A DNA stretch of 64,000 bases from Macrostomum lignano (lineage: Eukaryota), in the NCBI GenBank assembly GCA_002269645.1, contig NIVC01000109.1, forward strand, positions 62,001 to 126,000. Direction: 5' to 3'. The first letter of the stretch is position 1; every line of letters starts with the position of its first letter. The notes beneath the pieces were generated by a model, which was not told the DNA's origin, searched no databases, and worked only from the letters and a program-made list of their open reading frames with translations. Position numbers and translations under genes: made by a program. Shown in pieces: positions 4,274-64,000 of the stretch.

Positions 4274-5059
4274 CTTGACAAACCTTAACATCGCCCTCAG
4301 CTGAACAGGTCACTTGCGTCCTGTTTGACTTGCTGCTGTCATTTCTGGTGAAGCCGCAGTGTTGGAATCCGGACAGACTGTGACTGAAAGCGGCTGCAGT
4401 GCAGTTGGGTGCATCCTCATCCAGACCGGCTGGCTTCTTCTCACTGAGCAGCACTTCGATGCCCAGTGCTCTGTGGCTGACTGATGTGCAACGAGGGCAA
4501 TTACTTCTGGGTACATTATTACTGTAGCTCAGTAATGGAACGCCAATGGCTTACAGTTTTGTCTCCCATAGACAGTGATGGAGCGCACTGGGACACTTCG
4601 GGTCAGCTTCAGCAGCAGCCACTGGTAGCCGGAGGGGTCCGGAGTGTCGCTGGTATGAAAATAGGGCCACTGCCCGGCTTGTCCATTGATCTGATGAAGC
4701 AATCGCATTCTGGGTGATTGTAGACAGACGATTGCCAGGCATTGGCCATCTCAGCTCTGGAGACCTTGATGCCACGGCCTATTCAAACGATTCGTTACGT
4801 TTTTTGCTAGCTTTATGAGTTGTATTTTTTTACATAACTATACTCGTATATGGTTTGTGCTAAAGGCTTCGATAGAAATGAGTAGTATATCCTTCGAATT
4901 ACTTTGATCTGTTTTAATCTGGGAGAATTTCTGAATCCGTCGGTGCCTTTGCAGTATTCCCTTAAATGTGTGTCCTTTTCAAAAGTCCTTCCGAAACTCA
5001 CAGCATCTGAAGCAGCACAGACTGCAGACGAAAGCCGCCAGGATCAGCAGCCTGGGCAT
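4274..5059 (-). pseudogene. Receptor paralog A: F-type-lectin/Ig receptor pseudogene (signal exon plus lectin exons only)
   Basis: Exon 1 at 5059-5002 encodes MPRLLILAAFVCSLCCFRC and ends at a GTGAGT donor. Exons at ~4770-4510 and ~4490-4285 are closely similar to paralog B (16449-15929). There is a 1-nt frameshift before YFH and a 12-nt deletion, and the gene is truncated by the LTR at 4273. Confidence 0.8.
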
Positions 5060-5979
5060 GAGTAGTCTTACGGCGTATGATTTGTTGCAGTTAAATTTGT
5101 TCGATATCTCAGCCTAAATCGTAGAACTAATTCTGTTGGATGTGATCGAAGATGAGCAAAGCAAGCAACCAATTCGTAGCAAGTAGAGCAGTTCCTTTAT
5201 GTGACTTTTCATCGGCTCGCACAAATCTTCTATGAGTGTTTAAAAAGCCTTTGGCTGATCATTTTTAGATTGATGATCACTTCTGCTGCACCGCCCAATG
5301 AAATCGAAGCAGTTTTTTGGCATGACTGGCGCAAGTTCGCGCCGTACGCTGTCAATATTTGGCTTACGCGCAGGCAAACAACAGCACTGACGTCTCCATT
5401 TCAGATCCAAGTATCTATCTGGATCTTATTCCCGTAAGACACCATCGATAATCCGCGCCTCTGCCAAACCCTACCAACATTTCAGGCTTATGATAGCTGC
5501 AGTTGATGTTTAGGAGTTAATGATCGGACAGCAGAGGACCAAGAAAGATCGAAACGCAGAATCTGCAAGCTAGACTGATGTCTAAGAAAGGAAAACTTCG
5601 AGAGCCCCTGCTTTATGCGCGATTTTATATGGTTATGTAAGATTCCATTGCTGAGGCCTTAAGTTGACAAGAAATATCATATTTATTTCCATTTCTTTGT
5701 CAGCTCAAAGGAGATGGATGTCCTGGAGGCTTCTACTTCGCACTCTTTCTGTCAAGAATCCCAATAAAAATCCTCTAGTACGTGCTGTATCCTGGCATTG
5801 TTGGAGTTTCCTGGGATGAACTGTAGAGAAAATAATACTACTGAGTACAGTCACAGGCACGCTAAATGCACTCTTGCTACACATACGAGCTAAGTCCTGC
5901 TGGAGTTGGTATTTTCCGTGAGAGTCAGGTTTCAGTGTTTCTCAGAACAGGTTAAAATTGCAAAAAGTGTAACGTCCTC

Positions 5980-6515
5980 AGTCCCATGACCAAATGACCT
6001 CAATGTCCTCAGCCTCATGACCCCAATGTCATGTCCTCAATGTCCTCAGTCCCATGACCTCAATGTCCTCAACCCCATGACCCCAATATCACGTCCTCAG
6101 CTCAATGACCTCAATTTCCTCAGTCCCATGACCTCAATGTCCTCAGCCTCATGACCCCAATATCATGTCCTCAGCTCCATGACCCCAATGTCATGTCCTC
6201 AGCTTAATGACCTCAATTTGCTCAGTCCCATGACCCCATTGTCCTCAGTCTCATGACCCTAATGTCATGTCCTCAGCCTCATGACCCTAATGTCATGTCC
6301 TCAGCCTCATGACCCTAATGTCATGTCCTCAGCCTCATGACCCTAATGTCATGTCCTCAGCCTCATGGCCCTAATGTCATGTCCTCAGCCTCATGACCCT
6401 AATGTCATGTCCTCAGCCTCATGATCCTAATGTCATGTCCTCAGCCTCATGATCCAATGACCTCAGCCCCATGACTCCGATTTCCTCAGCCCCATGACTC
6501 CAATTTCCTCAGCCC
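5980..6515. repeat. Minisatellite, 23-28 bp unit (ATGACCCCAATGTC[ATGTC]CTCAGCCCC), left part
   Basis: Direct tandem units visible; continues after the LTR element at 11124. Confidence 0.95.
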
Positions 6516-6688
6516 TGTAGTGTGCGTACGCACAGTATGGTACGCCCGGGCAGTCTGATTGGCTGCGGAGTGGGGTGGGTGCCGCCACCCCAATTCTAAC
6601 TCCATAATATATAGACGCGTGCCCAGCGCGGCGAGATTTGTAAGAGTTTGGCTACACAGCAAACACGGCCTCTGACTCAGTTACTACA
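6516..6688 (+). repeat. 5' LTR
   Basis: TGTAG...CTACA; identical by eye to 10951-11123. Confidence 0.97.
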
Positions 6689-6689
6689 A

Positions 6690-6701
6690 TGGCGTCGCAA
6701 G
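6690..6701 (+). promoter_or_regulatory. Primer binding site
   Basis: TGGCGTCGCAAG one base after the LTR. It is complementary to a tRNA 3' end (...GACGCCA); the tRNA identity was not determined. Confidence 0.85.
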
Positions 6702-6720
6702 AACTGAACCTTTAAAAATC

Positions 6721-9700
6721 ATGACTCAGCAAATTTCACTCGCGCCACCCGGGCCGTTTACAATCGATGTGCTGTGCCACTCCACAGCACAGCGCTGGAC
6801 TGCATGGACTCGTCGCTTCGCCACGTACATCAATGCAGCTGGAATCACCGACAAGACTCGAGGGCAGCAGCTGCTGCTGTACGCCGCAGGAGAGGAGCTG
6901 CAGGCTGTTGTCGAAGAGAACAAGATCGCCTCTGGAGAGGACCACAGCAGCCTCGCGAAAAACATCCAGACGTTCTGTGACGGAAAGAATAACATTGTGT
7001 TCCTGCGTTTCAAGTTTGAGACCTGCAGACAGCAGCCTGGCGAGCCGATCGACCAGTGGTATCAGCGTCTGCGCAAGGCGGCGGAGCCGTGCGAGTTCGG
7101 CACCCTCAGAGACTCGCTGATCCGTGACAAAATCGTCGCCTACTGCGAATCTGAGAGACTCAGGAGAGACTTATTGCAGACCAACAATATCTCCCTGGCA
7201 GATGTGCTCAAAAAGGCGAGGGCGAAAGAAGCCGCGGAGCAGCAGGCCACCGCAATGGAGAGCGACAGACCAGGGGAACCGCAGCAGCTCGCAGCAGTCA
7301 GAAGAGACCAGAAGCCACAGATGCCGCAGACACCAACGCAGCACGTATCGTGCGATCGCTGCGGCAGGCCAGGGCACCCCACGTGCACCGCAGCGAAGGG
7401 CAAGAGCTGCAGAAAGTGCGGGAAGCCGGGCCACTTCGCGCGAGCCTGCAGGTCCAAGAAGGGCGCCCCGCAGAGCGGCGCCGACGCCGTCGCAAAGCTG
7501 CAAGGCGAGACCAGCTACCAGAAAGTGGACGACCCGGACTCCGGCGTGTTCGAGGTCGATCAGGGTGAGCAGTCGGCCCACACAATAGCCGAGATCAACG
7601 GCTCCAGACTGTCGGTGTTGATCGACAGCGGCGCGGCTCGAAATGTGATCAATCGGGCCACGTTCGAGAGTCTGAGACAGCGGCCGCACCTGCAGAACAC
7701 CTCGGACAGGCTGTTCGCGTACGGGTCGGACCGGCCGATGCAGCTGCTGGGCAAGGCGGCGATGGACGTTCGCATTTTCGGCCGGCAGGCAGTCGCCACG
7801 TTCCACGTCGTCGAAGGGAGAGGCATCACCATCATCGGCAGGCAGACGGCCACTCAGATGGACATTCTGCGGGTCGGGCCACCACCGACAGCCGGACAGC
7901 AGGTGCTGCAGGTCGCTGAAGCGGAGGCGGCGGTCGATGGTCTTCTCAGCGGCACGAGATCCAGCGGAGTGCCTCAAGGACATGTCGAGGACATCGGCAG
8001 GGTGCTGCGCAAGCACGCCAGCGTGTTCAGCGGAATCGGCTGCTTCACCGGGCCGCCTGCCGACATCCACCTCACCGACAGCGCCCGCCCGGTCTGCCAT
8101 GCGCCTTCGAAGGTGCCGATCCACCTGGCAGACGCGGTGGACAAGGAACTGCAGCTGTTAGAGCAGCTCGGGATCATTGAGCCCGTCGACGGCCCGGTGC
8201 TGTGGGTCGCGCGGATGGTCGTCGTGCCCAAGAAGGAGCCGGGCGAGGTGCGCATCACGCAGGACCTCCGCGATGTCAACCGCTTTGTCATCCGCGAGCG
8301 ACACCAGATTCCGACTTTCGAGGAGGTGACCGGGGACATGGCTGGCAGCACTGTGTTCTCAGAGCTGGACATCGCGAAGGCGTTCTACCAGGTGCCTGTC
8401 GCCGAGAAATGCCGCAACCTGCTAACATTCTCGACGCCTCGCGGGCTTCGCCGTCTCACCGGGCTGTGCATGGGCCTGTCCACCTCCCAGGAGATCCTGC
8501 AGAATGTGATGAGTCGAGTGCTGGCAGGCCTGCCCAACGTCAAATGGATCCACGACGACGTGGTCGTGTTCGGCCGCACGATGGCGGAGCACAACAGCAG
8601 CCTCGAGGCATGTCTGGCCCGCCTGGCGCAGCACGGCATCACGCTGAACGCTCGGAAATGCCGACTGGCGCGCAGCAGCATCGAGTTCATGGGAATGGGG
8701 CTCACGGCGGAAGAGGTCCAGGCCACGGAGAGCAAGGTCGCCGCCGTTCAAGACTTCAAGGAACCCGAGTCGATTGGGCAGCTTCGCTCATTCCTGGGCC
8801 TCGTGAACTACCTCGCCGTGTTCACACCACAGCTGGCCAAGGTGGCGGAGCCGCTGCGGCGCCTGACCAGGAAGACCGTCGACTGGCAGTGGGGCGCCGA
8901 CCAGGCCAGCGCCTTTGAGCAGCTGAAGCGCAGCATCGCGGAGCCGACAACGCTGGCTTTTTACGACAAGCGGCTACACACGCAGCTGATCGTGGACGCG
9001 GGGCCGACCGGACTGGGCGCCATCCTGGCGCAGGTGCAGCGCGACGGCAGCTCAAGGCCGGTTGCATACGCCAGCCGGACCCTCTCCGATGTCGAGCGGC
9101 GATATTCGCAGACCGAGAAGGAGGCACTCGCCGTGAAGTTCGGCTGCCTGAAGTTTGAGTACTACCTGCATGGATCGCCCCAGCTCTCAGTGGTCTCTGA
9201 TCACAAGCAGCTGACGGCCATGTTCGCGCCTGGGTCGCAGCCGCCTCCACGAGTCGAGCGAATGGCGCTGAGGATCCAGCACCTAGTGTTCAAGGTCGAG
9301 TATCAGCCGGGAGCCTCCAATGCTGCAGATGTACTCAGCAGGCAGCCCCTAAGCGAGCACGACGGAAGTTTTGGCGAGCAGCGGAGGGAGGCCTACATCA
9401 ACGAGGTGGCGCAGGCGGCTGTGCCGATGGCGCTGACGCTCCAAGACATCCGCAAGAGCTCTGCCTTCGACCCAGTCATCCGGGCGGCGATAGCGGCGAC
9501 GCAAGGCGGTCGGTGGGATCGCTCCAACCCCGAGATGCGCTCGCTCCACGCGCTGCAAGAGGAGCTGTTTGCGGTTGACAGGGTCCTCCTTCGACACCAC
9601 CGAATCGTCGTGCCAGCCGATCTGCGGCAGCAGATGCTCGAATTAGCGCATCAAGGGCACCAGTGCTCGCAGAAGACGATCGCCAGACTCTGCACGAAGG

Positions 9701-10725
9701 TCTGGTGGCCGAGGATGGCAACTCAAGCGGAGGAATTCGTCAGTCGATGCCGCAGCTGCGCCGTCACGTCGCACACGTCAGCCGTCCGGGCCACGCCTCT
9801 GCAGCCGACGCCGATCCCCACGGGCGCCTGGCTGTCGATCGGCGCCGATTTCGTGGGACCCATCAACAACAACATGCTGCTGGTGTGCGTGGACCGCTAC
9901 TCAAGGTTTCCGGAGGTGCACCTCATGCAGACGACGACGGCCGAGGCATTGATTCCCCGCCTGCGAGAGATGTTCGCCCGCTTCGGGATCCCACAGGAGC
10001 TCGTGACAGATAATGGACCACCTTTCTCGTCCAAGGAGTGCGGCCGGTTCCTGGCGAGCTATGGGATCAAGCACCGCCTCATCACGCCCTACTACCCAGC
10101 GGCCAACGGCATGACAGAGCGACTGAACCGCTCCATCAACAAAGTCGTGCGAGCAGCCATCGAGGAGCGGCGGGACTGGAGGGCCGCTCTGGACGAGTGG
10201 CTGCTGGCCTACAGGAACACGCCGCACACAGCCACCGGGCGCGCACCAGCCGAGCTGCTGATGGGCCGGCGGCCAAACGACATCATCCCCGCCACCCGGC
10301 CGTCCCAGCGAGTCCGCATCAACGAGCAGCGGCTGAGAGAAGCCGACGCTGGCGCCAAGGCGGCGATGAAGCAGCACGCGGACGCAAAAAGTCGACCACG
10401 GCGGCACGACGTCCAGGTCGGCAACTCGGTGCTACGACGGCGGGTCGGTGCCAGCAAGACGCAGACGCCATTCGAGAGCGGTGCCTGGACAGTCCAGCGG
10501 GTGGCCGGCAACTCGCTGCTGCTACGCCGGGACGGCACGACCTGCTGGCGGCACTGCACGGCGGTCAAAGTCGTCAGCCCCGACTTGGCCGACGCCGGCG
10601 CCCAGACGCAGACCGCTGCACCGAGAGCTTCGGGCGAGGCGGCCCGAGATCCACCCGCCTCCCCGGTGGCGCTGCGCCCGCACCCCCGCGCTGCTCGGGC
10701 GGGCGTGAAAATCTACAAGAACTGA
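6721..10725 (+). CDS. gag-pol: Gag-Pol polyprotein (gag with two zinc knuckles, protease, RT, RNase H, integrase)
   Basis: Zinc knuckles CDRCGRPGHPTC and CRKCGKPGHFARAC; protease LIDSGA; RT WIHDDVVVF; RNase H IVDAGPTGLGA...YSQTEKEALA; integrase HQGH...CRSC, ADF, TDNG and NGMTERLN. Uninterrupted 1334 aa in gypsy domain order. Confidence 0.98.
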   Translation: MTQQISLAPPGPFTIDVLCHSTAQRWTAWTRRFATYINAAGITDKTRGQQLLLYAAGEELQAVVEENKIASGEDHSSLAKNIQTFCDGKNNIVFLRFKFETCRQQPGEPIDQWYQRLRKAAEPCEFGTLRDSLIRDKIVAYCESERLRRDLLQTNNISLADVLKKARAKEAAEQQATAMESDRPGEPQQLAAVRRDQKPQMPQTPTQHVSCDRCGRPGHPTCTAAKGKSCRKCGKPGHFARACRSKKGAPQSGADAVAKLQGETSYQKVDDPDSGVFEVDQGEQSAHTIAEINGSRLSVLIDSGAARNVINRATFESLRQRPHLQNTSDRLFAYGSDRPMQLLGKAAMDVRIFGRQAVATFHVVEGRGITIIGRQTATQMDILRVGPPPTAGQQVLQVAEAEAAVDGLLSGTRSSGVPQGHVEDIGRVLRKHASVFSGIGCFTGPPADIHLTDSARPVCHAPSKVPIHLADAVDKELQLLEQLGIIEPVDGPVLWVARMVVVPKKEPGEVRITQDLRDVNRFVIRERHQIPTFEEVTGDMAGSTVFSELDIAKAFYQVPVAEKCRNLLTFSTPRGLRRLTGLCMGLSTSQEILQNVMSRVLAGLPNVKWIHDDVVVFGRTMAEHNSSLEACLARLAQHGITLNARKCRLARSSIEFMGMGLTAEEVQATESKVAAVQDFKEPESIGQLRSFLGLVNYLAVFTPQLAKVAEPLRRLTRKTVDWQWGADQASAFEQLKRSIAEPTTLAFYDKRLHTQLIVDAGPTGLGAILAQVQRDGSSRPVAYASRTLSDVERRYSQTEKEALAVKFGCLKFEYYLHGSPQLSVVSDHKQLTAMFAPGSQPPPRVERMALRIQHLVFKVEYQPGASNAADVLSRQPLSEHDGSFGEQRREAYINEVAQAAVPMALTLQDIRKSSAFDPVIRAAIAATQGGRWDRSNPEMRSLHALQEELFAVDRVLLRHHRIVVPADLRQQMLELAHQGHQCSQKTIARLCTKVWWPRMATQAEEFVSRCRSCAVTSHTSAVRATPLQPTPIPTGAWLSIGADFVGPINNNMLLVCVDRYSRFPEVHLMQTTTAEALIPRLREMFARFGIPQELVTDNGPPFSSKECGRFLASYGIKHRLITPYYPAANGMTERLNRSINKVVRAAIEERRDWRAALDEWLLAYRNTPHTATGRAPAELLMGRRPNDIIPATRPSQRVRINEQRLREADAGAKAAMKQHADAKSRPRRHDVQVGNSVLRRRVGASKTQTPFESGAWTVQRVAGNSLLLRRDGTTCWRHCTAVKVVSPDLADAGAQTQTAAPRASGEAARDPPASPVALRPHPRAARAGVKIYKN

Positions 10726-10950
10726 ATTTGAAATCCTGCAATGACTGAAATTAACTGACTTTCTTTTCCGTAATATGCGGACTGAAGTTTTTTTACGTTT
10801 TTGCTGCAATCAATTCAAATATTTTATTTCCTCAATACTTTAATCTCCATTTTCAATGCGCATCATCGGTGAATCTTTCGAACTTTGTATTTTCGAGTTA
10901 CGTTTAAATCGATTTTCTTCTCTCTCAGTCTCTATTCGAAAGGGGAGAGA

Positions 10951-11123
10951 TGTAGTGTGCGTACGCACAGTATGGTACGCCCGGGCAGTCTGATTGGCTG
11001 CGGAGTGGGGTGGGTGCCGCCACCCCAATTCTAACTCCATAATATATAGACGCGTGCCCAGCGCGGCGAGATTTGTAAGAGTTTGGCTACACAGCAAACA
11101 CGGCCTCTGACTCAGTTACTACA
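10951..11123 (+). repeat. 3' LTR
   Basis: Identical to the 5' LTR; preceded by the PPT and followed by TSD AGCCC. Confidence 0.97.
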
Positions 11124-11720
11124 AGCCCCATGACCTAATGTTCTCAGCCCCATGACTCCGATTTCCTCAGCCCTATGACCCAATGTTCTCAGCCCCATGT
11201 CTCCGATTTCCTAAGCCCCATGACTCCCAATGTCCTCAGCCCCATGACCCCCAACGTCCTCAGCCCCATGACCCCAACATCCTCAGCCCCATGACCCCAA
11301 CATCCTCAGCCCCATGACCCCAACATCCTCAGCCCCATGACCCCCAATGACCTCAGCCCCATGACCCAATGTTCTCGGTCCCATAACTCCAACGTCCTCA
11401 GCCCTGTAGGCAGCGCCTACTATCGTGTGTGTGTTGGGGGGTTGTCAGCGGCTGCGCCGCGTGACTCTGCTAGCTCAACCCTTATGCGTACAATATCAAA
11501 TGTGCATGGTGTGACTTTAGCAACCACCCTGTCTCAGCTCAATTATTCAATAAATATACTGATCGCTATTATTCTCGCCTGCAAGCTTTCGGCAACTATC
11601 GACTACAACAAGCAGTCTAGCCTCGTTTCACTCACTACAAGCCCCATGACCGCCAACGTCCTCAGCCCCATGACCCCCAATGTCCTCAGCCCCATGACCC
11701 CAACATCCTCAGCCACGTGA
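11124..11720. repeat. Minisatellite (ATGACCCCAA[C/T]ATCCTCAGCCCC type), right part
   Basis: Same unit as 5980-6515; interrupted by the solo LTR at 11405-11639. Confidence 0.95.
11405..11639 (+). mobile_element. Solo LTR (235 bp), different family
   Basis: TGTAGG...CACTACA with an internal AATAAA, flanked by the 5-bp TSD AGCCC. Confidence 0.88.
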
Positions 11721-12244: not shown

Positions 12245-15200
12245 TCAGCCCTCAGCATAGTAGTACACAGCCTGGAATGATTTGCCGTATTGAATCAATT
12301 AGAATCATTCTTTACAATACGTACCTGCTACTTATAATAGAAGTAGTATACACAGCTACATTGCTGAATATTTTTACCATAAGCTCAAACTAAATTCTGT
12401 AGAGTGTTCTACCTCCCGCAAAAGTAAATTGACAATTGTAGAATGCTACTATAAGTGAGTAAGTGCACGCATGTGCACCTAAACTTTAAGGATGATTCAT
12501 GTTACTATTTTTAGCAAATGAATCATGTTACTATTTATAGCAGATTAATCACGTTGCTATTTTAGCAAATGAATCATGTTACTATTTATAGCAGATTAAT
12601 CACGTTGCTATTTTAGCAAATGAATCATGTTACTATTTATAGCAGATTAATCACGTTGCTATTTTAGCAAATGAATCATGTTACTATTTATAGCAGATTA
12701 ATCACGTTGCTATTTTAGCACATGAATCATGTTACTATTTATAGCAGATTAATCACGTTGCTATTTTAGCACATGAATCATGTTAATATTTTTGGCCTAC
12801 GAAATCGTCCATAAATACAAGCGGTTCAAAGCGGTACCGGAGTCATTCTCCCCATGGAAGAGGAGCGCTCCAAAGAGGAAGTTCTTAGCGAGACTTTCTG
12901 ATCACCAAGTCAATCGAGACTCGGTCGAGTTGTTGCGGTAAGCCTTTCTCATTAGAGAATCTATTAGAGATTACCGGAGCATTACCTAGAGTGCATAGAG
13001 GCACTACTAGAAGGAGAAGGCTAAAGAGAAACCGCTATTCGGCGCAGGGTACCCATTGTTTGATACGAGGCCTCTGATTGGTCCTGACTGCAGATACCGG
13101 CCGGAAACTACTTCATCGGAAGTACCAGGAGAAGCAGGACCAGAACAACAGATTCAATATTCTTCCGGAAGACAACGGACGAGATCTATTGTGAGATCTA
13201 CAACGAGAACTACTGAAGAGATCTCTCATACGAAGTCAAGGTAAGCAGTACCTTCAATTGATAACGGGGTTGCCTAGCTAAGTGCTAGAAGTGATTGTTC
13301 CTTGATTACAGAGAAAGTCTGGTAATAAGGAACACATCAGTTCTAAGAGTTTCGGTAAACTGATTTCGCAAAGCTTACGTTCGGGTCAGCGGCCCTAAGC
13401 GCTGTGGCAGCCGGCAGCTCCACTGCAGAGGCTTTGCTTCGACGGCCCGTTGCTGGCAGCCGCTTCAGCAAGGCAAAAATCGCCACAGCTGAGACAGCAG
13501 AAACTGCAGCCAGCGAACAGCAAATTACAGCAGTTTTATTAACCCCTCTGGGCTTGTGGAGCTCGCAGTTTGCTACAGAGAAAAGTACATGTACTTTTAG
13601 CATCACTTTGTGCACTTATTAGGACCTATTGTTTCAGAAGTACACAAAGACTTGCTCACTGAACAGGGCTTGAAAAGTTTTCGAGTTCTCCGTCAAAAAC
13701 TTGGGATCTTCGAAGCCAGTTCGGGCCTGGTTGGTGCGGCACGTGACCACGACCTCAGCCTGCTGCTCGCTGAACCGGTGGAACACTCGAGCTCTCCGAA
13801 TCCAACCACCGCAGATGCCCCGCAGATCCACTTCTGTCAGCAGCTGTCAATCAAAGTTAAATTAAAGGTGTGAATCAACTGTCTAAAGAAGACGTAAAAA
13901 CACCAACCGTACCACCAGTTGCATTGTTCCGACAGTCTCGGATCTCAGCAGACACTGCAGCTCCGGCCTCGGGTTTCCCTCCTCCACAAGCACAGTCAGA
14001 TTCAAGTCAAAACCATTGAGCAGCTGGCCTGAGATGTCGATGCTCTCTGGAGGGACTGTTGAAGAATTTCAGACAATGAAAAGCTCCTCTATGAGGTCAC
14101 ATTAGTTTTAAATCAATAATTTTTAAACATCCACATCAGATTTAACTGGTAACCTGGTTCCGCATTAGATTTTTAAAATCCAACTTCGAGTATATCGACT
14201 CCAAGGCAACTAACAAAAGAATTTATGGAAAGAGACAATACGAAAATTTAACATGCATCCAAAAACAAGCAGAAGTACATGGACACTTACACAGAACTGC
14301 AGGCAGCTCGCGACGAGCCGTTACATCGAACAGTCCTGACTGGTTCACCCGACACGAAACTGATGCTGAGCTTCCCCAGCTCCTGCTCACAGTCACTGAG
14401 AATGTGCTGCTTGAGTTCGTGCTCTGAAATGAGTCAGTTTTCACAGCTAAATGTCAGGTCATTGTTGCCATGCACCCAATACACAGGTGCAACCATGGGC
14501 TGTGAGACTCACTGACAGCAGCTGAAGCGCTGTGTTTCCATTTCGCTGTGACTGGACAGAGCAGCTGTGGCTGATTGGCATCCAGTAGCAACCCGGTGTG
14601 TCAGCTGTCAGATTGACGGCTGCTCCGTCTGTCCAGCTGGTGTTTGCGGGGAGCAGCAAGTGAGTGGTGCAGGGCTCTGGAAGGGTTTGAGTAGTGAGTG
14701 GTGCAGGGCTCTGGAAGGGTTTGAGTAGTGAGTGGTGCAGGGCTCTGGAAGGGTTTGAGTAGTGAGTGGTGCAGGGCTCTGGAAGGGTTTGAGTAGTGAG
14801 TGGTGCAGGGCTCTGGAAGGGGTTGAGTAGTGAGTGGTGCACGGCTCTGGAAGGGTTTGAGTAGTGAGTGGTGCAGGGCTCTAGAAGGGTTTGAGTAGTG
14901 AGTGGTGCAGGGCTTTGGAAGGGTTTGAGTAGTGAGTGGTGCAGGGCTCTGGAAGGGTTTGAGTAGTGAGTGGTGCAGGGCTCTGGAAGGGTTTAAGTAG
15001 TGAGTGGTGCAGGGCTCTGGAAGGGTTTGAGTAGTGAGTGGTGCAGGGCTCTGGAAGGGTTTGAGTAGTGAGTGGTGCAGGGCTCTGGAAGGGTTTGAGT
15101 AGTGAGTGGTGCAGGGCTCTGGAAGGGTTTGAGTAGTGAGTGGTGCTGGGCTCTGGATTGTCTTCATTGTTATGATTGCCTTTCGCTCTAATACTCATGT

Positions 15201-17364: not shown

Positions 17365-17645
17365 GGGAACTGTAGCCGAGTGGTCAGAGCGTCGGCCTCA
17401 CGACTGAACGGTTGGGGTTCGATTCTCAACCCATTCGTAACAATTTGTGTCCTTGAGCAAGCCTCTTATCTCTGCATTGCTTCAGTTTACCCAGCTGTAA
17501 AATGGGTGCCAGCATTAGCTGGGGTAATTGAGGGTGTGTGTGGCGACCCCCCAGTCCTTGGGCTGAACAGCCGTGTACAGCAATAGCTGCGGCTGAGCTG
17601 TCGGTTGCACACCTGCCCATTAGGATAGGTGTAATTAATAATAAT
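17365..17645 (+). mobile_element. tRNA-derived SINE with CORE-like central domain
   Basis: A box TAGCCGAGTGG and B box GGTTCGATTC, followed by GTGTCCTTGAGCAAG...CAGTTTACCCAGCTGTAAAATGGG and an AAT tail. Further copies at 55113 and 56452. Confidence 0.85.
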
Positions 17646-17859
17646 TTAAAAATTCTTCTGATTGTCTCTTATTCTAGTGATGGCCAAGTCAAACAGATGG
17701 ACGAATTCGCTTTAATATCCGTGCTGGATAAAGTCAGGTTTTGCAACTGATCTCTCTTGTCTGTTGTTCGTCACGATTCGTTTACAATGCGGAACCGTTG
17801 AATGTTAGATATAAATTAATGAATTGGAGAAAGGTATATCCTGAAAAATTTGGTCTATT

Positions 17860-19787: not shown

Positions 19788-20699
19788 TTCAGACAGGCAT
19801 GTGGTGTAAAGTTGAATAACTCTAAAACCCATTATCTTTCCTTGCATTCTGCCATCCATTCTCTTTAGTTCGTATACAATTTGCAAATTAGCCTGAACAG
19901 TCAGGTAATTTTGAATTTAAAAGTCAGTTTTAGCTTAGAAGTTCCACAACCACATTCTCTGCCGGAAGCGAAGTTATAAAGTCTTCTATGTAAAGAAAAA
20001 GTTATATATTATCTGGAATAAAATGCTGAACTGTGATATGCCTCTGGTATATTTGTCTCAGACAAGCAAACATTCTCGCTTCAATTAGATAGCAATGCTA
20101 AAATTAGTAACTGTCAAAAGTTACTGGAATCGGATAGTTTACAGGATTGGAGAGCACAGGTCTTTGGAGTTTCTAAACGAAACAGGTGACTAAAACGCAA
20201 TGATGATTCCATATTTAGAAGCAAATATTAATGCATAAACATTCACAAAAGTCGCCAAGACTTGAAACCAGTCGGGCAGAATAAACAGGAATTCATATCG
20301 AATTTGAATTATAGATGCTTTTGCTAACAAAAGTATCAGTTAGTGCTTAGATACGGTTGCATACCCTTTAGGGGAATCTTGCTGGAGTACAATATAAACA
20401 TTGTGGTTCATAAATGTTTGGGTCTATTATTTGAATCATGCATCCGCATTGAGATGAGTCTTTAGTCACGCAGTTTGGAGCTCAAGTTTGAGCTGAAATT
20501 GCTTGGAAAATGCTTGGATACAACTGGAGATACTGGAGTTGCAGAGTAGCATAAAGTAGAAAGTTTTATGTTGACCCTATTTAAAGGCCATTGCAGTTAA
20601 TACCTGTGGGTACAAGCGCATATGCTTTGGTGTGTTGTAACAGTGTCAATAAGGAAGATTAGAAAATTTTGAATTCTACAGACAATTCTTCCAATACGA

Positions 20700-21712: not shown

Positions 21713-21725
21713 ACAAAGGCGTCTC

Positions 21726-54300: not shown

Positions 54301-57300
54301 ATGGACGGCGGCTCAGTGGCGTGCAGCGTCTCTCAGACCGGCCTCGAAGATCTGAGCAGCAATTTTCGGCAAAACATCACCGTTTTCTGTAAGCATAAAG
54401 TTGACTTTTTTACACAATGATTATCAAAAATTTATTTGAAGAATGCCGAATTCTAGTGCTAATTGCAAGTAGTAAAAATGTACGCGTAAAAACTACGAGT
54501 ACATTGGCAATGAGTTTCTTCAGGCGGAAGTTGAGTGGGATAAATGACTCAAAAACAGGGCAATGAAATTGGAGTGAAAAATATTTAAAAACCTTGCAGA
54601 CCCAGTGCGGAGCGCCTCCATCAGGCTGGCCGCACCGCAGATCCGAGCGAATTCTCCAGCTCAAATTCTGCTGCTCGCCTCTGACCGCGGAAATCCTCCG
54701 GCTCTGCACAGCTGCTCTGCTTCTGGAAGGATTCTCAATCTTTTAAAGGTAGGGAAAACCATTTTAACAGTGCTGTACGTTTCTTATTTTCGCTCTCAGC
54801 ATCCAAAACGGGTTTCAGCCTTCGACATGTCTGAATGCGTCATCACTCTGGACGTGGAACTTCCCTACCGATGACTCTGGACAGAAAGTCTACTGCGAAA
54901 TCGTTCAAACTGCCAAAGATGGTTCGACTTTATTCAATCAGACTTTTAGCAGCGGCCGAGTCGAACTTTTTCGTAAGTTTTTTGATTCTGACAAAATACG
55001 AACCTACTTGTATGTTAAATCTATGGTTTATGTAAGTATTGTTTCTAAACCTGCGATATCTATGAGTATCATACATAGTATATGCCTTTCGCAAATTTTT
55101 CTTTTGTAATTTGAGAGGAGGTTATACCCTAGTGGTTAGAGCGTCGGACTTACGACTGAAAGGTCGGGGGTTCGATTCTCTACCGACTAGGAACAATTTG
55201 TGTCCTTGTGCAAACTCTGCATTGCTTCAGTTCACCCAGATGGGGTAACTGAGGGTGTGTGGTGACCCCCCCCCCCAGTCCTTGGACTGGACAGCCGTAC
55301 GCAGCCTTCAGATGCGCCGCGCAATGGCTGCGGCTGAGCTGTCGGTTGCACATCTGGCCAATTGGGGCAGGTGTAATCAATTATTATTGTCAGTATTTAG
55401 CTACTTAAGTAATTGACATAAAAAACCGATTACTGATAAAATGATTGACCCTCTTTTTTATCAGCATTAAAACAAAGAAAACGTCTACAGAAATTTTAGC
55501 CGCAAACCTTCATTCCAATTTTCAGTCTTGGCCAACAACTCACTGACGTTCAGTCCCAGCGCGTTCATTACTGAAGGCGACAATTTAACCATCACAGCCG
55601 TGTCAGTTGGTGGCAGACCACCCGTGAGAAATGTCACCTGCTGGGCTGGAGGGACCCTGCTTCAGGTTTGCTTTTACCCAGCTGTTATTAAAGTATGTTT
55701 TGGTTTATTGTAACCTCATTATTCACGAAAACTTATCCATTGGCAGGAAACTGCACCATCTAATGCGTCTCTAGCACCAGACCGGTTTGAAAAGCAATTC
55801 ATGCTGAATGCGATAACACGCAAGTACAATAGAAGGACTCTAAGCTGTGCATTTGAGCAGGATGACAAGTTGGCGCAGTGGATAAACACGACTCTTGATG
55901 TGTTCTGTAAGTTGCACATTTATCTTAAGTTTTAAGCCTACATTATCATAAGCTGTTAAAATAATTTTGAACCCTCGCAGATGCGATCCGAAACGCATCG
56001 ATCAGTTTATCCTCAGCTCGAGTTCTGAGCGAATCTGCTGTGAGTTTCACCCTGCAGACATCGGATTCGGAAAATCCACCAGCTCGACACTTTTGTCACC
56101 TGGCTGAGAGGACGCTTCAACAAGCGGTACGTAGAAATTGCACCAGAATGATCGGAGCAGATAATCGTAAAAGTAATGCAATAAATCAAAACTTTTAGAT
56201 CCCAGCTTCCAACAACAACTCATCGACTTGGAGATTCACGCCTGCTGCCAGTGACAATGGAATGCGGATCAAATGTCAAATTGTCCAAATTGCTCAAAGC
56301 GGTTTCACTGTTTTTCATTTACTAGTGAGCAGTGAGATGCTCAATGTGCTGTGTGAGTTTGTAAAGGCTCTTTCCGAATTTTTATTGAGTTTAACTATTA
56401 AACGGGACATGTCTATAGTACTTTAGGGCTGTACACAGTATAAAGTCAAATGGGGTTGTAGCCTAGCGGTTGGAGCGTCGGACTCACGTTTGATAGGTCA
56501 GGGCTACGATTCCCGTTCCACTCGGAGCAATTTGTGTCCTGAGCAAGACACTTAACTCTACATTGCTTCAGTTCTCCCAGCTGTAAAATGGGTGCCAGCA
56601 TTAGCTAGGGTAATTGAGGGTGTGTGTGGCGGACCCCCCCCCCAGTCCTTGGACTGAACAGCCGTACGCAGCCTTCAGATGCGCCGCGCAATAGCTGCGG
56701 CTGAGCTGTCGGTTGCACATCTGCCAATTAAGGCTGCTCATTTCTTTCAGATGAAGCAAAAACTCAATGGACTGCTACTCGGCTGCAACTACTGAGAGAG
56801 GGCGAGCACCTCTCAGTCTCCGTGAAGTCCCTGGGTGGCAACCCGGAGCCCAGCCACCGGTGCTGGCGGCAGACAGGCGATGGTCCCGTAGTGAGCTTGC
56901 ACAATCGTGTAAAGCAAGTCAAAGAGGCGAACCAGCTCGAGACCAGCTTCGGCACGAAGGTTGAAAAGTGGATGAACGGCGGCCATGTAGTCTGCAGAGT
57001 CAAGCAAGATGGACTGCGAGACCGAGTCTTCCGGAAGAATATTTCCGTGATCTGTGAGCGGTCTTAACTTGAATATAAGTTGATCTACAAGTATCTAATG
57101 CCATTAGACTTCTAAGCACTACCGACTCAAACGTCTGATCCTCCCGCAGTCCCATCGAACTGGATCAGCTGGTCAGGCCAGTTGGTGAACGGGTCCGACC
57201 TCAACCTGACAGTGGAAACGGGCGAAGGTAATCCAAAACCGGTTCTGAAGTGCACCCTGAACTCCGGCAGATCAGACGGCGAGAGACTTACGGTTTGAAC

Positions 57301-57939
57301 TCTGAATTTTTATTGATAGCTCGTACTCTGCATGGCCCACAGATTCTAATGCTCTTCACTTTTATTCATTCTGACTGACAGGTAATTCCTGAGCCCTATC
57401 ACACAGGCAGCAACCGGGGCTGGATTCGGAGAGTGCGACTCATTCATCGGTTTTCCGAGCGGCAAACTGAGGTTGAGGTCACTTGCAAGCTCAGCCAGCC
57501 TTACTCAGATGTTCTCAACCCATTCCCAGCTCTAACGATAAAAAGAACATTTCAGGGTGCTTTCGGTAAGTGTCTGAGTCGGTTTGATATCGATCCCATC
57601 CCAAATCCCAAAAACACAATTTCTCCTTTCAACAAAAGCTGCAGTATATAGATGGTCATTAACTGTCACGCCGGCTCCGACAGTTGCTGTACTCTGCTGC
57701 TTACTGGCCGTAGTTGCCGTGGCAACTGTCGCTGCTGTGCTCAAGAGGAATCGAGCTGCCGCTAGCGGTCGAAGAGATGGTGTCGAGCTGCAGGCCACTG
57801 GGAAACCGAACGACCCTAGCGTGAGTTGAGCAGCTTCATTGTTAACTTCAATACTTCATTCACGGAATTTCGCTAATGTTAAAGGTACATCCAGCAAATG
57901 TTTTTCTTACAGACTGTGTACTACGAAGCGGACAACTGA
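42384..57939 (+). CDS. Receptor paralog E: signal peptide + F-type-lectin-like domain + ~10 Ig domains + TM + short Tyr tail (multi-exon, apparently intact)
   Basis: Exon 1 at 42384-42444 (MDFSVNLAIFFICTLCCVGY). Intron 1 contains the Maverick. Lectin exons at 50648-50866, 50958-51151 and 51222-51518. Ig exons run from ~51600 to ~57565. TM exon at 57645-57820 (VAVLCCLLAVVAVATVAAVLKR). Terminal exon at 57913-57939 (TVYYEADN*). Phases were consistent throughout the manual walk. Confidence 0.82.
42540..43060. repeat. ~21-bp intronic minisatellite (ATATGGAAGGGCGAGTCGGGG), left of the Maverick
   Basis: Direct tandem units; continues at 49802. Confidence 0.96.
43061..43194 (+). repeat. Maverick left TIR
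   Basis: Near-perfect reverse complement of 49668-49801. Confidence 0.95.
44721..45258 (+). mobile_element. 5'-truncated LINE (RNase H C-terminus plus zinc-binding tail)
   Basis: WLQWIPSHIGIQGNEEADQEAK...LRCGH...CSFC...H...C, a (CA)n tail, and a 10-11-bp TSD (A)CAGCAGCAGC. Confidence 0.85.
45320..45690 (+). repeat. 90-bp coding tandem repeat x4
   Basis: AEVSLSDLIRDMDSGPAPPPPPPPTEVQPA repeated. Confidence 0.95.
46600..47060. repeat. 7/8-bp satellite (CCGATTC[A])n inside the Maverick
   Basis: Direct observation; abuts and truncates the capsid-like ORF. Confidence 0.96.
47040..47501 (-). pseudogene. N-terminal fragment of a Maverick minor capsid (penton, PX)-like protein
   Basis: IICSENAEGTPSDFHFHLPSPIYLDRNVDYEAGLAEIHLPAAWFNV resembles the Maverick minor capsid N-terminus as recalled (F...LP..i.L....evaL.ei..p..w.n). 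It lies directly downstream of the integrase and runs into the satellite. Confidence 0.6.
47514..48593 (-). CDS. int: Maverick c-integrase (DDE) with C-terminal chromodomain
   Basis: WEMDLVEM, RTDQGKEF and IIERWNRTLK motifs; chromodomain VIEKVL...YLVKWAGY...WVDEKDL; uninterrupted. Confidence 0.95.
   Translation of the reverse strand: MFLKMEKIYFNPNQPASYCSSSKLQHELRKRGEHIGVKSIEKWLSQQPVHTLHKPARVRFPRAPIIVRAIDDQWEMDLVEMIPFAKYNRGHKYILTCIDVLSKFAMARALKSKSAAEVKSAFESMLKSSKRQPRTVRTDQGKEFVNAIFRQFCIDRGILAFPTSSEHKAAIIERWNRTLKSKMWRYFTHNSTLQWLDVLPKLVKSYNNTFHRSIKTTPMNVSKANETEVWMNLYDGKAIETVEKLRKPKFCENQSVRISNAPRLFRKGYKANWSEEVYTIVFRAPKHYPYMYRIRDMKGEDIRGLFHEHELQAVPDSQRLYVIEKVLKTEKRKGKIRYLVKWAGYKSTDWVDEKDLRKV
48756..49519 (-). 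pseudogene. Tandem PC4/Sub1-like ssDNA-binding-domain protein with a 1-nt frameshift
   Basis: From ATG 49519: MDIGEGYKLQIQEYEGVMFIAIRKFY...LKPG, shifting into FNLNIRQWEKLKEL. A second unit, VPLTPPLWRKLWQYADWIDEQL, resembles the PC4 consensus ISL...QW..L....ID. Confidence 0.6.
49668..49801 (-). repeat. Maverick right TIR
   Basis: Ends CTACTACT, followed by TSD ATGGAG. Confidence 0.95.
49802..50540. repeat. ~21-bp intronic minisatellite, right of the Maverick
   Basis: Same unit as 42540-43060. Confidence 0.96.
51785..52190. repeat. ~39-bp intronic minisatellite (~10 units)
   Basis: Reverse complement of the 27865-29190 unit, in the equivalent intron of E. Confidence 0.96.
55113..55388 (+). 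mobile_element. tRNA-derived CORE-like SINE
   Basis: Same family as 17365-17645 (A/B boxes, GTGTCCTTG core, GCTGCGGCTGAGCTGTCGGTTGCACA 3' part). Confidence 0.85.
56452..56730 (+). mobile_element. tRNA-derived CORE-like SINE
   Basis: Same family; core reads TTTGTGTCCTGAGCAAGACACTTAACTCTACATTGCTTCAGTTCTCCCAGCTGTAAAATGGG. Confidence 0.85.
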
Positions 57940-60799: not shown

Positions 60800-61050
60800 A
60801 GGACAGGCTCACCTACCTCGGTCCAAACCCGGACCTCTCCGAAGTTTTCAGGCCCGAGAATCTCTGCCAGCTCGTCCGCTACCTAAGGGCTACCGGGCGA
60901 TCGACCATCCACCTCCTGGTCTCTCCGGAGGGGACACCGACCATGCAGGGTCTCCCTGCGCGACACCGCAGCACCAGCTGTCCGTGGTTGGCAGGGGTTA
61001 TCGGCATGGACGCCAAAGCCTCATTGCTGCATCCGGACCGACGGAGACCC
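60800..61050 (+). mobile_element. LINE 3'-end remnant duplicated with the upstream region of paralog G
   Basis: Similar to 41738-41995; homology to the E upstream region continues through exon 1. Confidence 0.65.
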
Positions 61051-61485
61051 TGCAGCTGAGTCAAATTAAAGTAAAAGAGTGCGAACTTATATCTGCTGGT
61101 GTCTTTGTCTTCGTCTCTGAGCTGTTGAGGCAAATTTGTCATACTTGAACATCGCTGCAAAATGCAATTGGCAGAATTTTACACATCTTTTTCAAGTTTA
61201 ACCTATGAAAAGTGAGAGCGTACAGTGCTGCGCAAATGTGAGAGTAAGCAGAGTTCCATGACAAGTAAAATTCAACCAAACTGTAAAAACTAATTAATAG
61301 CACGTACAACTATGTCTGAAAAATAAAGATTTACGTCGCAGCATCGTAAAGTGTATTGCCGTATTTTCAAAGAGTTCCATAGTACCATTTTTTTGAAAAA
61401 AGTTATTTGAGACTGAAGCGATTACAACGTAGCCACATAGCAGAAACCCAGTGCAAAAATATCCGATACACAACGAGAAGTCAGA

Positions 61486-64000
61486 ATGGATTTCTCTGTG
61501 AACCTGGTAATTTTCTTCATATGCACCTTGTGCTGCGTTGGATACTGTGAGTACTTATCAACATATGATTGCTTAACCTGAGACCAGAATTTCGTATTGA
61601 CCAGCACAACAGATATTTAAGGGCGAGTCCGGATGTGGAAGGGAGAGTCCGGGATGTGGAAGGGCGAGTCGGGGATATGGAAGGGCGAGTCGGGGATATG
61701 GAAGGGTGAGTCGGGGATATGGAAGGGCGAGTCGGGATATGGAAGAGCGAGTCGGGGATATGGAAGGGCGAGTCGGGATATGGAAGGGCGAGTCAGGGTT
61801 ATGGAAGGGCGAGTCGGGATGTGGAAGAGCGAGTCGGGGATATGGAAGGGCGAGTCGGGGACATGGAAGGGCGACTCGGGATATGGAAGGGCGAGTCGGG
61901 GACATGGTAGGGCGAGTCTGGGACATGAAAGGGCGAGTCGGGGATATGGAAGGGCGAGTCGGGGACATGGTAGGGCGAGTCGGGGATATGGAAGGGCGAG
62001 TCGGGATATGGAAGGTCAAGTCAGGATTATGGAAGGGCGAGTCGGGGATATGGAAGGGCAAGTCAGGATTATGGAAGGGCGAGTCGGGATATGGAAGGGC
62101 GAGTCGGGGATATGAAAGGGCGAGTCGGGGATATGGAAGGGCGAGTCGGGGACATGGTAGGGCGAGACTGACATCGAAGAGACTATCGGTGTCATTATGC
62201 AGCCATAGTGAAGAACGACTTCGCCATCAGGAAATCCAAGGTCATCACACCTCACCTAACAATGCTGCAGGCGTTGGCGTCAACATAACAGCCAAGGAGA
62301 TTTCTGACGCATGGCAATCTTCCGCATTCAGACAAGGCTGCTTCCGTGACTCATCAGCCAGACCATGGCAATGGGACTATTTTCACTCCAGCAACACTCC
62401 AGATGCTTCTGGCTACCAGTGGCTGCTTGTGAAACTTGCTCGATGTGTTTCAGTGCGCTCTGTGATTGTCCACCGAAGGAATGTCGGTGAGTTGTCAATT
62501 TCAAGTAGCTGTTTAAACTAAATATTCAAATGAACAGCCATTTTTAGATTAACCATGCTTGAATCAATAGCTATGGTTTCAGACAAAGTCAGGGCCCAGG
62601 GCATCGAGGTTCTGCTCGGCCACCAGATGCCGGCAGGTCTGACTGAGAGTCCACTTGACTGCATCGCGAGTTTCAACCACAGTCTGACCGAATTTTACCT
62701 GTGCGGAGTCACTGGAAACTTTGGCAACTCGAACTTTTCATACAAAATGACCTGCGCAACTCGGAATTATTCCAAGGTTTGGCACCCGCTTACTGGATCC
62801 ATTCGAGATTCGAACTCGCTATCCTCACTTTTGAATCCCATTGCAGCTGCCGAGGTTCGTGTTGCTGAGGAAATTCGTTGCCAATGCAGCCGACAAGTAC
62901 ATGAACTTCGTGATGGTGGAACTTGAGGAAGATGAACAAGATGAAGCACAGGAGTCTGGCTGCTTTAGAGAATACTTTTGCAAGCCAGAAGGCAGAAAAA
63001 GATGCTCTGTTGAACAATTGTCAAAACTGACGCAAAGTGACAAGGTGATGGTTAAAGAGTCGCTGCCATGCAAGACAGAGAAGCCTGACTCAGTGAACTG
63101 CAGCATCAGAACCCGTAGCGGTGACGTCATTCCCTTGAGAATCGTAAGGACTGAATCGAAATCAAATTGCAGTGTAAGATGTAAAACAGTATTACATTAA
63201 AGTTTCCCTTCAATCTTACAGAAGACTTATAGACCCAGCTTCCTGATTCTGAACGACACTACCGTAACTTGGGAACTGCACGGTGCGTCACTGCAGTGCC
63301 GGCACAGCTGCACTGATGGCACTCTGGCGGTGACTTCACAGACGTTGGGACTCCGCGGTTGGAAGTCGATCAGTGAGTTCTGAATGTGGGGCGTTGACTC
63401 TATTCTGGGAACTTTTTGGGGAAGTAGCGAGCTGTTTGTGTTCTGGGGATTATTGGGGAAGTAGCGAGCTGTTTGTGTTCTGGGAAAATTTTGGGGAAGT
63501 AGCGAGCTGTTTGGGTTCTGGGGAATTATTTTGGGGAAGTAGCGAGCTGTTTGTGTTCTGTGGAATCTTTTAGGGAAGTAGCGAGCTGTTTGTGTTCTGG
63601 GGAATTTTTGGGCAAGTAGCGAGCTGTTTGTGTTCTGGAAAATTTTGGGGAAGTATCAAGCTCATTGGCCCCTGTGTTGCGCATAAACTCGGAAAATTTC
63701 AGAAATCCCATCGTCCATTCAGCTGAACCTTGGCTTCACTAAGTACTGGGTGGTCAACAGTACTGCAGTTTTCACATTCATCACTCAAGGCTCGTTTCCA
63801 ATGCCTGTGCACAAGTGTTCGGTGGCAATTTCTGTATCGAGTTCAAATGATTCGATTAAACAACTGAACCTGACATCTGAAGTGAGAATAAAACTTTCAA
63901 GAACACTTTTAGGCAAAATTTTCATTATCTGAATGGAAGAAATCTTTGACATTTTGAATTTTAGAAACTCACCACAAGGAGCAGAAATGCGAGCTTTGAC
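61486..64000 (+). CDS. Receptor paralog G (partial, runs off the window): signal peptide + F-type-lectin-like domain + Ig1-Ig2
   Basis: Exon 1 at 61486-61546 (MDFSVNLVIFFICTLCCVGY); exons at 62271-62486, 62583-62776 and onward closely match E and C. Confidence 0.82.
61620..62165. repeat. ~21-bp intronic minisatellite without a Maverick insertion
   Basis: Same unit as in intron 1 of E; represents the empty site. Confidence 0.95.
63400..63655. repeat. ~39-bp intronic minisatellite (~6 units)
   Basis: Same unit as 51785-52190. Confidence 0.95.

Follow-up and report, generated by a model that had tools for sequence, protein, structure and literature searches.

A Macrostomum lignano gene cluster predicted to encode membrane proteins with an F-type-lectin-like tip on an immunoglobulin stalk

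A 64,000-nucleotide stretch of the genome of the flatworm Macrostomum lignano (assembly GCA_002269645.1, contig NIVC01000109.1, positions 62,001 to 126,000 of the forward strand; hereafter the window, within which all positions are counted) holds a group of related multi-exon genes, raising the question of what kind of proteins they encode and what these proteins might do. An earlier note made from the same letters had proposed lectin-bearing immunoglobulin (Ig) receptors with a role in immunity or allorecognition. On the sequence evidence presented here, the window carries a species-restricted gene cluster for predicted membrane proteins in which a row of Ig modules is topped by an F-type-lectin-like domain.

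Self-comparison of the window and tblastn with the final models recovered five copies of paralogous sequence (A, B, C, E and G) in both orientations, exactly the five listed in the earlier note, which had also recognized A as a pseudogene. Three of them (B, C and E) are complete multi-exon genes, G is cut by the window end and A is broken. The models were read exon by exon from the genomic letters and then assembled, and those of B, C and E run from ATG to a stop codon with GT-AG at all junctions and 0 internal stops. Gene B (17111-13343, minus strand; 11 exons, 628 aa) encodes, in order, a signal peptide, the F-type-lectin-like domain, a Cys-rich spacer, two two-exon Ig modules, a transmembrane segment and a 40-aa tail. 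Genes C (40771-22432, minus strand; 21 exons, 1328 aa) and E (42384-57829, plus strand; 22 exons, 1297 aa) are longer, each with a less certain two-exon module after the spacer and then eight clear Ig modules, three of which are single-exon in C. The signal exon of C (40771-40711) is followed by a transposon-filled first intron of 10.4 kb and that of E (42384-42444) by one of 8.2 kb. Because these signal exons lie far upstream and only 1.6 kb apart on opposite strands, C and E stand head-to-head. The lectin-like domain is modelled on exons 30329-30111, 30019-29826 and 29755-29459 in C and 50648-50866, 50958-51151 and 51222-51518 in E, and the transmembrane exons are modelled at 22721-22432 and 57645-57829, respectively. 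The junctions of C recur in an independent UniProt model, P0040, which also uses the acceptor ttccag/AGC (the slash marks the splice junction) common to B, C and E at the second half of the first Ig module. Residues 109-473 of E are 100% identical to P0002 (A0A1I8J6S7), a match over 365 aa.

The exon phases are equally regular. The signal exon has phases 0>1 and the three exons of the N-terminal domain 1>1, 1>0 and 0>0. An Ig module occupies either one exon (1>1; 300-318 nt) or two exons (1>0 and 0>1, with a phase-0 intron between them); all module boundaries are in phase 1, and most modules are split again by the phase-0 intron. The transmembrane exon has a phase-1 acceptor in each gene and in an orphan copy, and the phases follow the classical rule of the Ig superfamily (IgSF). 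The layout of a signal exon, three exons for a beta-sandwich domain, phase-1 Ig modules and a transmembrane exon, as first described, was thus seen in the models almost throughout; what did not hold was the position of the signal exons of C and E, which lie far upstream (40771 and 42384), and the tyrosine-bearing tail discussed below.

The remaining copies are partial. The 5' part of gene G runs on the plus strand from 61486 to the window end at 64000, with frames for a signal exon (61486-61546), the lectin-like domain and spacer (62271-62486, 62583-62776 and 62847-63143) and further exons at ~63222-63372 and 63703-63881; its lectin-like-domain frames read the same residues as P0001 (accession beginning A0A1I8J...) in a comparison made by eye, not computed. 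The remnant of gene A found by tblastn (5059-4270, minus strand) comprises a signal exon (5059-5002) encoding MPRLLILAAFVCSLCCFRC and lectin-domain exons 1-2 at ~4780-4270, the first of them frameshifted. Self-comparison gave 83% DNA identity between A and B over 4276-4780, and the similarity stops at 4276, with retroelement DNA adjoining. The orphan transmembrane exon announced in the earlier note is present at 60323-60175 on the minus strand; it encodes ...SPSAVQLAAVGGGLATVAAAVCALVAAAVWRRRRSANETGAAAKSEPTQ, and its phase-1 acceptor, GTGAGT donor and layout are as in the transmembrane exons of B and E. It has no further gene exon around it, and tblastn of the window with the family models gave neither lectin nor Ig matches nearby.

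What, then, is the N-terminal domain? In single-sequence searches the gene C version had no Pfam match even at E <= 10 and none among PDB sequences, and the relative P0021 showed a weak F5_F8_type_C match (16.7 bits against a cut-off of 28.2). Two profiles were built, A1 from the window copies and A2 from a broader family of 13 sequences. Profile A1 had one PDB match, the striped-bass fucolectin FBP32 (3CQO, E = 0.039). With profile A2, all six PDB matches were F-type lectins: 3CQO (1.2e-6), eel agglutinin 1K12 (0.012), lectinolysin (3LE0 and 4GWI) and S. pneumoniae 2J1R and 2J22. No discoidin, CBM32 or DOC sequence was among them, which counts as a built-in control. HHalign against a profile of the F-type lectin domain (FTLD) returned a probability of 97.2% (E = 4e-11) over 118 columns. 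In a library of 1.84 billion representative proteins, A1 matched 25 proteins, of which ~17 (representatives at 50% identity) are M. lignano proteins with the lectin-like domain. The matches also included F-type lectin proteins of Tigriopus (2.8e-11), Lacerta (1e-6) and Rana (1.4e-5) and the single-domain FTLD protein P0025 (E = 4.4e-4), all confirmed by Pfam as F5_F8_type_C_2 or F5_F8_type_C, the multi-domain matches scoring through four weak copies each.

The AlphaFold2 model of the domain, computed from alignment A2, is a galactose-binding-type jelly roll (pLDDT 82, pTM 0.83). Its top Foldseek matches were CBM32, 1K12 (rank 3, TM-score 0.58/0.61), APC10/DOC, SUN and discoidin jelly rolls, and 3CQO and lectinolysin were matched as well. 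The domain thus models as expected of an F-type lectin, with 1K12 among the top matches, but the fold alone is undiscriminating: it fixes the superfold, and it is the sequence profiles that point to the F-type lectin branch. The family keeps the pattern AWQSS...YFH(S/T)...YQWLL.KL...V.VRS...R...R...C...C...(F/Y)VLLRK...E(L/I)E, so that the motif A.QSS...FH(S/T)...QWL on which a fucolectin-type domain had been proposed is present and conserved, and the proposal stands in the form of a remote homology. We take the domain (~165 aa) to be a very divergent FTLD homologue with a remodelled pocket, as judged from these alignments. Public annotation misses it, and the proteins are filed as 'Ig-like domain-containing' or 'hypothetical'.

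Would such a domain still bind sugar? FTLDs are defined by the fucose motif HX24RXDX4(R/K), a Cys82-Cys83 pair and the calcium motif h2DGx (PMC5712786), and none of the three is kept in the family alignment. The window genes read YFH39...R70-x-x-E73-x-x-R76 (YFH-x30-R-x-x-E-x-x-R), with a different spacing and without the Asp at +2. Most family members conserve the His and both Arg, with Glu at 73. In the alignments R70 and R76 fall opposite Arg79 and Arg86 of the eel agglutinin; His39, by HHalign, precedes the canonical His by four residues and sits in a loop that has four extra residues. The vicinal disulfide has no counterpart in the alignment, where NVEKV, QKESH or a similar stretch devoid of Cys separates the two Arg, and the region aligned with the calcium motif is CFRDSS or CFIRSI in the window genes. 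HHalign shows that the disulfide equivalent to Cys108-Cys124 of the eel agglutinin (AAA) is retained. Because the canonical motifs are not kept, sugar or other ligand binding can be proposed for the domain but not read from it, and the description 'glycan-recognising' in the earlier note is not established.

The same loss of sugar and calcium motifs would suit a different kind of protein, namely ordinary IgSF adhesion molecules in tissue architecture or neural wiring, whose jelly-roll tip would serve for protein contact like the discoidin domains of neuropilin, DDR and Caspr; the fold is known to bind protein in DOC, SUN and discoidin domains. It sits less well with the conservation of His39, Arg70 and Arg76 in most divergent members, although these match the basic residues of the lectin pocket only approximately. 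The stalk bears on this alternative too. An alignment of 17 Ig modules taken from B, C, E and relatives shows C37 and C84 to be invariant, with the signature GNPxP ahead of one Cys and (N/D)G..(V/I).C..Q at the other, as expected of an Ig module of ~100 aa with two conserved Cys 45-60 residues apart and B/F-strand motifs. Their profile matched SYG-2 (2.1e-8) and nectin-4 (1.8e-4) best in the PDB, followed by SIRP-alpha, PVR, titin and many antibody constant domains, so that the modules come closest to the C2-set of SYG-2/nephrin and the nectins, as adhesion molecules would. The shortness of the tails would suit adhesion molecules too. Gene E as a whole scored 23.9 bits against Pfam C2-set_2 (cut-off 21), and single modules fell just under the Pfam cut-offs; the modules are of the CD80-like C2-set type. 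Profile, score and phase-1 boundaries together bear out the C2-set assignment made earlier. Pfam found no FN3, VWA, EGF, Sushi or Lectin_C domain in E and B.

A spacer of ~230 residues (residues 186-420 of E, exons 51222-52671, with equivalents in B, C and G) separates the lectin-like domain from the first clear Ig module and is made of a Cys-rich stretch and two beta-rich segments. It is conserved in the family, with motifs such as HGA.L.CRHSC, the gene B version being much shorter, and had no family match. The spacer may represent a novel domain or two highly diverged Ig domains in a row.

The distribution of the family is narrow. Spliced window peptides are 93-100% identical to M. lignano UniProt proteins; the peptide read across three joined exons of the minus strand near 30 kb, for example, matched only three database proteins, all from M. 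lignano, at 93-98% identity. Complete relatives show the lectin-like domain, then Ig-like modules, a transmembrane segment and a tail, and every family member that could be named is from M. lignano. A word-based search with the spacer and Ig region returned M. lignano proteins only, and a second one, started from the family alignment, yielded just 6 fragments and overlooked evident members. Conserved single-copy adhesion orthologues of the nephrin/hemicentin kind, which would have refuted the earlier reading, were not found: across the 1.84-billion library and the word-based search, the relatives were M. lignano proteins only. Core adhesion molecules are usually conserved, so the lack of an orthologue outside M. 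lignano in these searches argues against the adhesion alternative, which we regard as unlikely. A literature search for flatworm F-type lectins, M. lignano lectin/Ig genes and the gene identifiers of the relatives found nothing relevant.

Because the distant member P0008 occupies a separate locus, beside an RRM/MLLE gene, where the 26 kb of sequence retrieved contain no further gene call, the family is partly clustered and partly dispersed. The UniRef names of the family fragments (P0001, P0007, P0010, P0016, P0019, P0021, P0022 and others), among them 'IRS-type PTB', 'MATH', 'Fibrinogen C-terminal', 'Sushi', 'SET' and 'FAD_binding_2 domain-containing', match nothing in the sequences and look like artefacts of automatic naming, unsuitable for use.

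The cytoplasmic tails are where a signalling function might show. The modelled tails contain no Tyr in E, one in B and three in C, so that the 'short Tyr tail' of the earlier description applies to B and C but not to E, and none of the three carries a motif of the immunoreceptor tyrosine-based inhibitory or switch type (ITIM/ITSM). The 3' ends of E and B are of the same type, that of C is different. In B, E and the orphan, a strong donor closes the transmembrane exon (DPN/gtaagc, DPS/gtgagt and PTQ/gtgagt), which suggests a further exon, yet peptide comparison downstream of the E and B transmembrane exons, including the tail peptides of relatives, gave no significant conserved last exon. Three relatives carry TxYxxI about ten residues from the C-terminus, P0008 (TEYTEI), P0021 (TVYLEI) and P0029 (TEYLDI), and the P0008 tail additionally carries VVYAQV. 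A motif scan for last exons yielded one credible candidate, for gene C only, at 21854-21726 on the minus strand, 0.6 kb beyond the transmembrane exon. This exon, a lead only, encodes NLLNNTEYATVIGSGTDPSGSLETLYLHIVGHMDDDGNMVFA with two TxYxx(V/I) motifs, TEYATV and TLYLHI, and then a stop; its acceptor is in phase 0 with a pyrimidine tract (ctctgccatttgtag). A join would be possible because a GT follows ...SHYLYK in the transmembrane exon of C.

Tyrosine motifs of this ITIM/ITSM-like kind, in the relatives and in the candidate exon of C, are what an innate immune or allorecognition locus might show, in which polymorphic, fast-evolving lectin-Ig receptors of the FREP/VCBP/Alr kind would recognize non-self glycans. 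Clustered, duplicated and lineage-restricted genes in a repeat-rich region would also be expected there, as would a lectin-type domain combined with Ig domains, and immune recognition is a frequent role of F-type lectins (PMC5712786). Signalling motifs, however, are missing from the modelled tails of E and B, and the fucose-binding motif is not kept. The substitution pattern speaks against it as well. Between B and E, the ratio of nonsynonymous to synonymous substitution rates (dN/dS) was 0.27-0.48 in every domain (lectin domain, dN 0.42 and dS 0.94); it was 0.5-0.7 between C and E and 0.2-0.7 among duplicated Ig modules. Gene G entered this comparison through its lectin domain only. Values near or above 1 occurred only in the C/E/G lectin domain and rest on 3-10 substitutions, such as 1.77 between C and G from 7 substitutions. 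This pattern indicates relaxed purifying selection on the paralogs with no sign of positive or diversifying selection, and their earlier description as rapidly diversifying is not supported by pairwise values of 0.2-0.7 that nowhere convincingly exceed 1. Macrostomum is, moreover, a solitary worm, and neither colonial fusion nor tissue-fusion allorecognition is known in it, unlike the situation of Hydractinia Alr. We consider an immune locus of this kind quite unlikely.

Lineage-restricted, duplicated and moderately constrained genes would also be compatible with reproductive recognition at the surface of sperm, egg or female tract, comparable to oyster bindin, a protein of F-type lectin repeats whose evolution is shaped by sexual selection. 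Macrostomum is known for fast-evolving reproductive genes. Bindins, on the other hand, are secreted acrosomal-vesicle proteins composed of FTLD repeats, not Ig-stalked membrane proteins, and the pairwise dN/dS did not detect positive selection, leaving this explanation a slim chance even though F-type lectin domains do act as gamete-recognition bindins in oysters (PMC5712786).

Are the copies functional genes at all? Several observations could be taken for decay or artefact, with the copies being pseudogenes or assembly duplicates: A is frameshifted and truncated, a transmembrane exon lies orphaned, the large first introns are invaded by transposons, and C, E and G are 89-97% identical in the self-comparison. 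M. lignano also has a recently duplicated genome that is difficult to assemble. Nevertheless B, C and E keep 11-22 open exons with canonical splice sites, dN/dS lies well below 1 between the old paralogs B and E, and ratios below 1 indicate that the frames are real coding sequence. C and E are not simple duplicates, because their exon content and 3' ends differ. That the whole set is decaying or artefactual therefore seems very improbable. The 5' 1.6 kb of C and E (28796-30430 and 52182-50547), introns included, are 97.4% identical against 89-93% for the rest, which suggests recent gene conversion between the inverted neighbours, and their lectin domains differ at 3 of 495 nt. Within C, three near-identical single-exon Ig modules point to recent exon duplication.

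Taking these lines together, we lean towards type I membrane glycoproteins of an M. lignano-restricted cluster, with the lectin-like tip and Ig stalk acting as recognition receptors. From the outside inward, each protein would consist of a cleaved signal peptide, the ~165-aa jelly roll, the ~230-aa spacer, an Ig stalk of two C2-type modules in B and eight or nine in C and E, a transmembrane helix and a short tail. At the cell surface, the Ig stalk would keep the lectin-like tip away from the membrane, and the tip would recognize its ligand, most likely a glycan, in a modified basic pocket formed by the conserved His39, Arg70, Glu73 and Arg76. For signalling, the proteins could rely on partner proteins or on the TxYxx(I/V) tyrosine motifs that several relatives and the candidate last exon of C contain. 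The cluster grew by tandem and inverted gene duplication and by Ig-exon duplication within genes, probably with gene conversion between the head-to-head C and E, in a setting rich in transposons and minisatellites.

A number of points weigh against this recognition-receptor reading. The models of B, C, E and G were built from genomic sequence, and given the 89-97% identity of C, E and G in a recently duplicated genome, misassembly could account for some of the copies. The N-terminal domain stays below the threshold of every Pfam model, both for the gene C domain and for full-length E and B, and in the fold search CBM32, DOC, SUN and discoidin domains score as well as the FTLD. With the fucose motif, the Cys pair and the calcium motif gone, the ligand of the domain could be a protein. 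AlphaFold2 gave the spacer (E residues 186-473, from P0002) a pLDDT of 35 and a pTM of 0.23. At the other end, the modelled tails of E and B have no recognizable signalling motif, their 3' ends are uncertain because of the conserved GT after each transmembrane exon, and the candidate exon of C, a short peptide, has no significant BLASTP similarity to the tails of relatives. The arena of recognition may be immunity, tissue adhesion or mating, and reproductive or adhesive roles fit equally well as immune ones.

The surrounding DNA is repeat-rich and eukaryotic, and Rfam and tRNA scans of the window gave no matches. Between A and B lies an intact Ty3/Gypsy-type long terminal repeat (LTR) retrotransposon (6516-11124, plus strand; Pfam RVT_1, RNase H, rve and zf-CCHC) with 100% identical 174-bp LTRs and an uninterrupted 1334-aa gag-pol open reading frame (ORF), probably young, and a 23-28-bp satellite lies on both of its flanks (6030-6504 and 11124-11404). 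The first intron of C contains a transposon nest (30900-38400, plus strand; Pfam Exo_endo_phos_2, RVT_1 and rve, with Tandem Repeats Finder). Its element of the long interspersed (LINE) type has an endonuclease ORF at 32458-34023 and a reverse transcriptase ORF at 35677-37134, parted by two inverted blocks of a 65-bp-unit satellite (33976-34690 and 35122-35725), and a separate integrase ORF lies at 37019-38395. In the first intron of E, a 6.7-kb insertion (43061-49801, strand not assigned) is bounded by 134-bp terminal inverted repeats (43061-43194 and 49801-49668) of 98.5% identity. It carries an rve-integrase ORF (47514-48593, minus strand), interrupts a 21-bp minisatellite of that intron and may be an integrase-bearing DNA transposon.

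The 21-bp minisatellite occupies 42528-43059 and 49811-50543 in intron 1 of E and 61612-62166 in that of G; intron 1 of C has no such array. A 39-bp minisatellite lies in intron 5 of C (27869-29198), E (51779-52192) and G (63403-63662), with 34, 10 and 7 copies, respectively. In gene B, the intron before the first Ig module (14659-15157, minus strand) holds a 34-bp minisatellite of 14.7 copies at 97% identity, whose unit spans the acceptor site together with the opening codons of the Ig exon (...cccttccag/AGCCCTGCACCACTCAC...). In B this intron-exon boundary is therefore duplicated in tandem, and since 34 bp is not divisible by 3, the many potential acceptors that result would shift the frame; C and E have a single copy of the unit at the equivalent place. 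Between B and C lie arrays of a 10-bp unit (17853-19788, 194 copies) and a 14-bp unit (20682-21716, 74 copies), the latter ending ~10 bp from the candidate terminal exon of C. A dispersed repeat of ~200 bp (translation ...AAELSVAHLP...), probably a short non-autonomous element, is found upstream of B (17371-17574) and in two introns of E (56457-56665 and 55249-55413).

How much would such proteins add to what is known of F-type lectins? These are known as secreted fucose binders in immunity and fertilization, and they also occur in a few mosaic membrane proteins. If the window domain binds glycans, the range of F-type lectin architectures widens, a flatworm that regenerates and is tractable by RNA interference and transgenesis gains a candidate family of surface recognition receptors, and domain shuffling would be seen to converge on a siglec- and FREP-like design. 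Without glycan binding, the locus would still offer a clean case of a lectin fold put to another use, and the family profile allows better annotation of these genes either way. A bolder version, which we hold to be doubtful, is an independent siglec-like system in which a degenerate F-type jelly roll reads glycans on an Ig stalk and signals through TxYxx(I/V), with paralogs differing in specificity and stalk length; it would amount to lineage-specific self/non-self or mate recognition in a flatworm.

Among known systems, the F-type lectins themselves (AAA 1K12, FBP32 3CQO, lectinolysin and the SpX FTLDs) share the jelly-roll fold of the window domain and the blocks QSS...H...WW/QW-x-(V/L)-x-L...V-x-(I/V)...R...R...G-x-E-(I/V). 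The window domain differs in being encoded by three exons and in its fusion to Ig modules and a transmembrane segment. Known F-type lectins are mostly secreted, with single or tandem FTLDs (PMC5712786). The partners of eukaryotic FTLDs are C-type lectin, pentraxin, CCP and FA58C domains and transmembrane segments; the review does not have Ig domains among them and does not mention flatworms (Vasta 2017; PMC5712786). The lectin-(Ig)n-transmembrane architecture is thus absent from the combinations in Vasta 2017, in agreement with the earlier remark that it is not recognizable as a named family. Drosophila Furrowed and CG9095 resemble the window proteins in having an FTLD-type tip, a long modular ectodomain and a single transmembrane segment, and the sugar-binding triad of CG9095 is likewise degenerate (PMC5712786). 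Their stalk, however, consists of CCP (sushi) repeats and a C-type lectin domain, where the window proteins have C2-type Ig modules, and nothing points to orthology.

The nephrin/SYG-2 proteins and nectins, the closest matches of the window Ig modules (SYG-2 and nectin-4), have no lectin-like tip or spacer, whereas the window genes have no FN3 domain, and no orthology was found. Hydractinia Alr proteins are clustered transmembrane proteins with Ig-like ectodomains, one exon per domain and pseudogene copies, and the window cluster resembles them in this layout, with no sequence relationship expected. The molluscan VIgL proteins of Biomphalaria (FREPs, CREPs and GREPs) combine IgSF domains with a lectin-type domain in a lineage-restricted lophotrochozoan multigene family. 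Those proteins are secreted and carry their Ig domains at the N-terminus and a fibrinogen, C-type or galectin domain at the C-terminus; in the window proteins an F-type-lectin-like domain comes first, and a membrane anchor is predicted. Siglecs and other ITIM/ITSM receptors share the overall design proposed here of a glycan-binding tip, a C2-set Ig stalk, a transmembrane segment and a tail with Tyr motifs. The siglec-type (V/T)xYxx(V/I) occurs in the relatives P0008, P0021 and P0029 and in the candidate exon of C but not in the modelled tails of E and B, and the siglec tip is a V-set Ig domain whereas the window tip is a jelly roll, a resemblance of design, not of descent. In architecture, then, the nearest relatives are Furrowed and CG9095, and in concept they are the FREP/CREP/GREP proteins and, by design, the siglecs.

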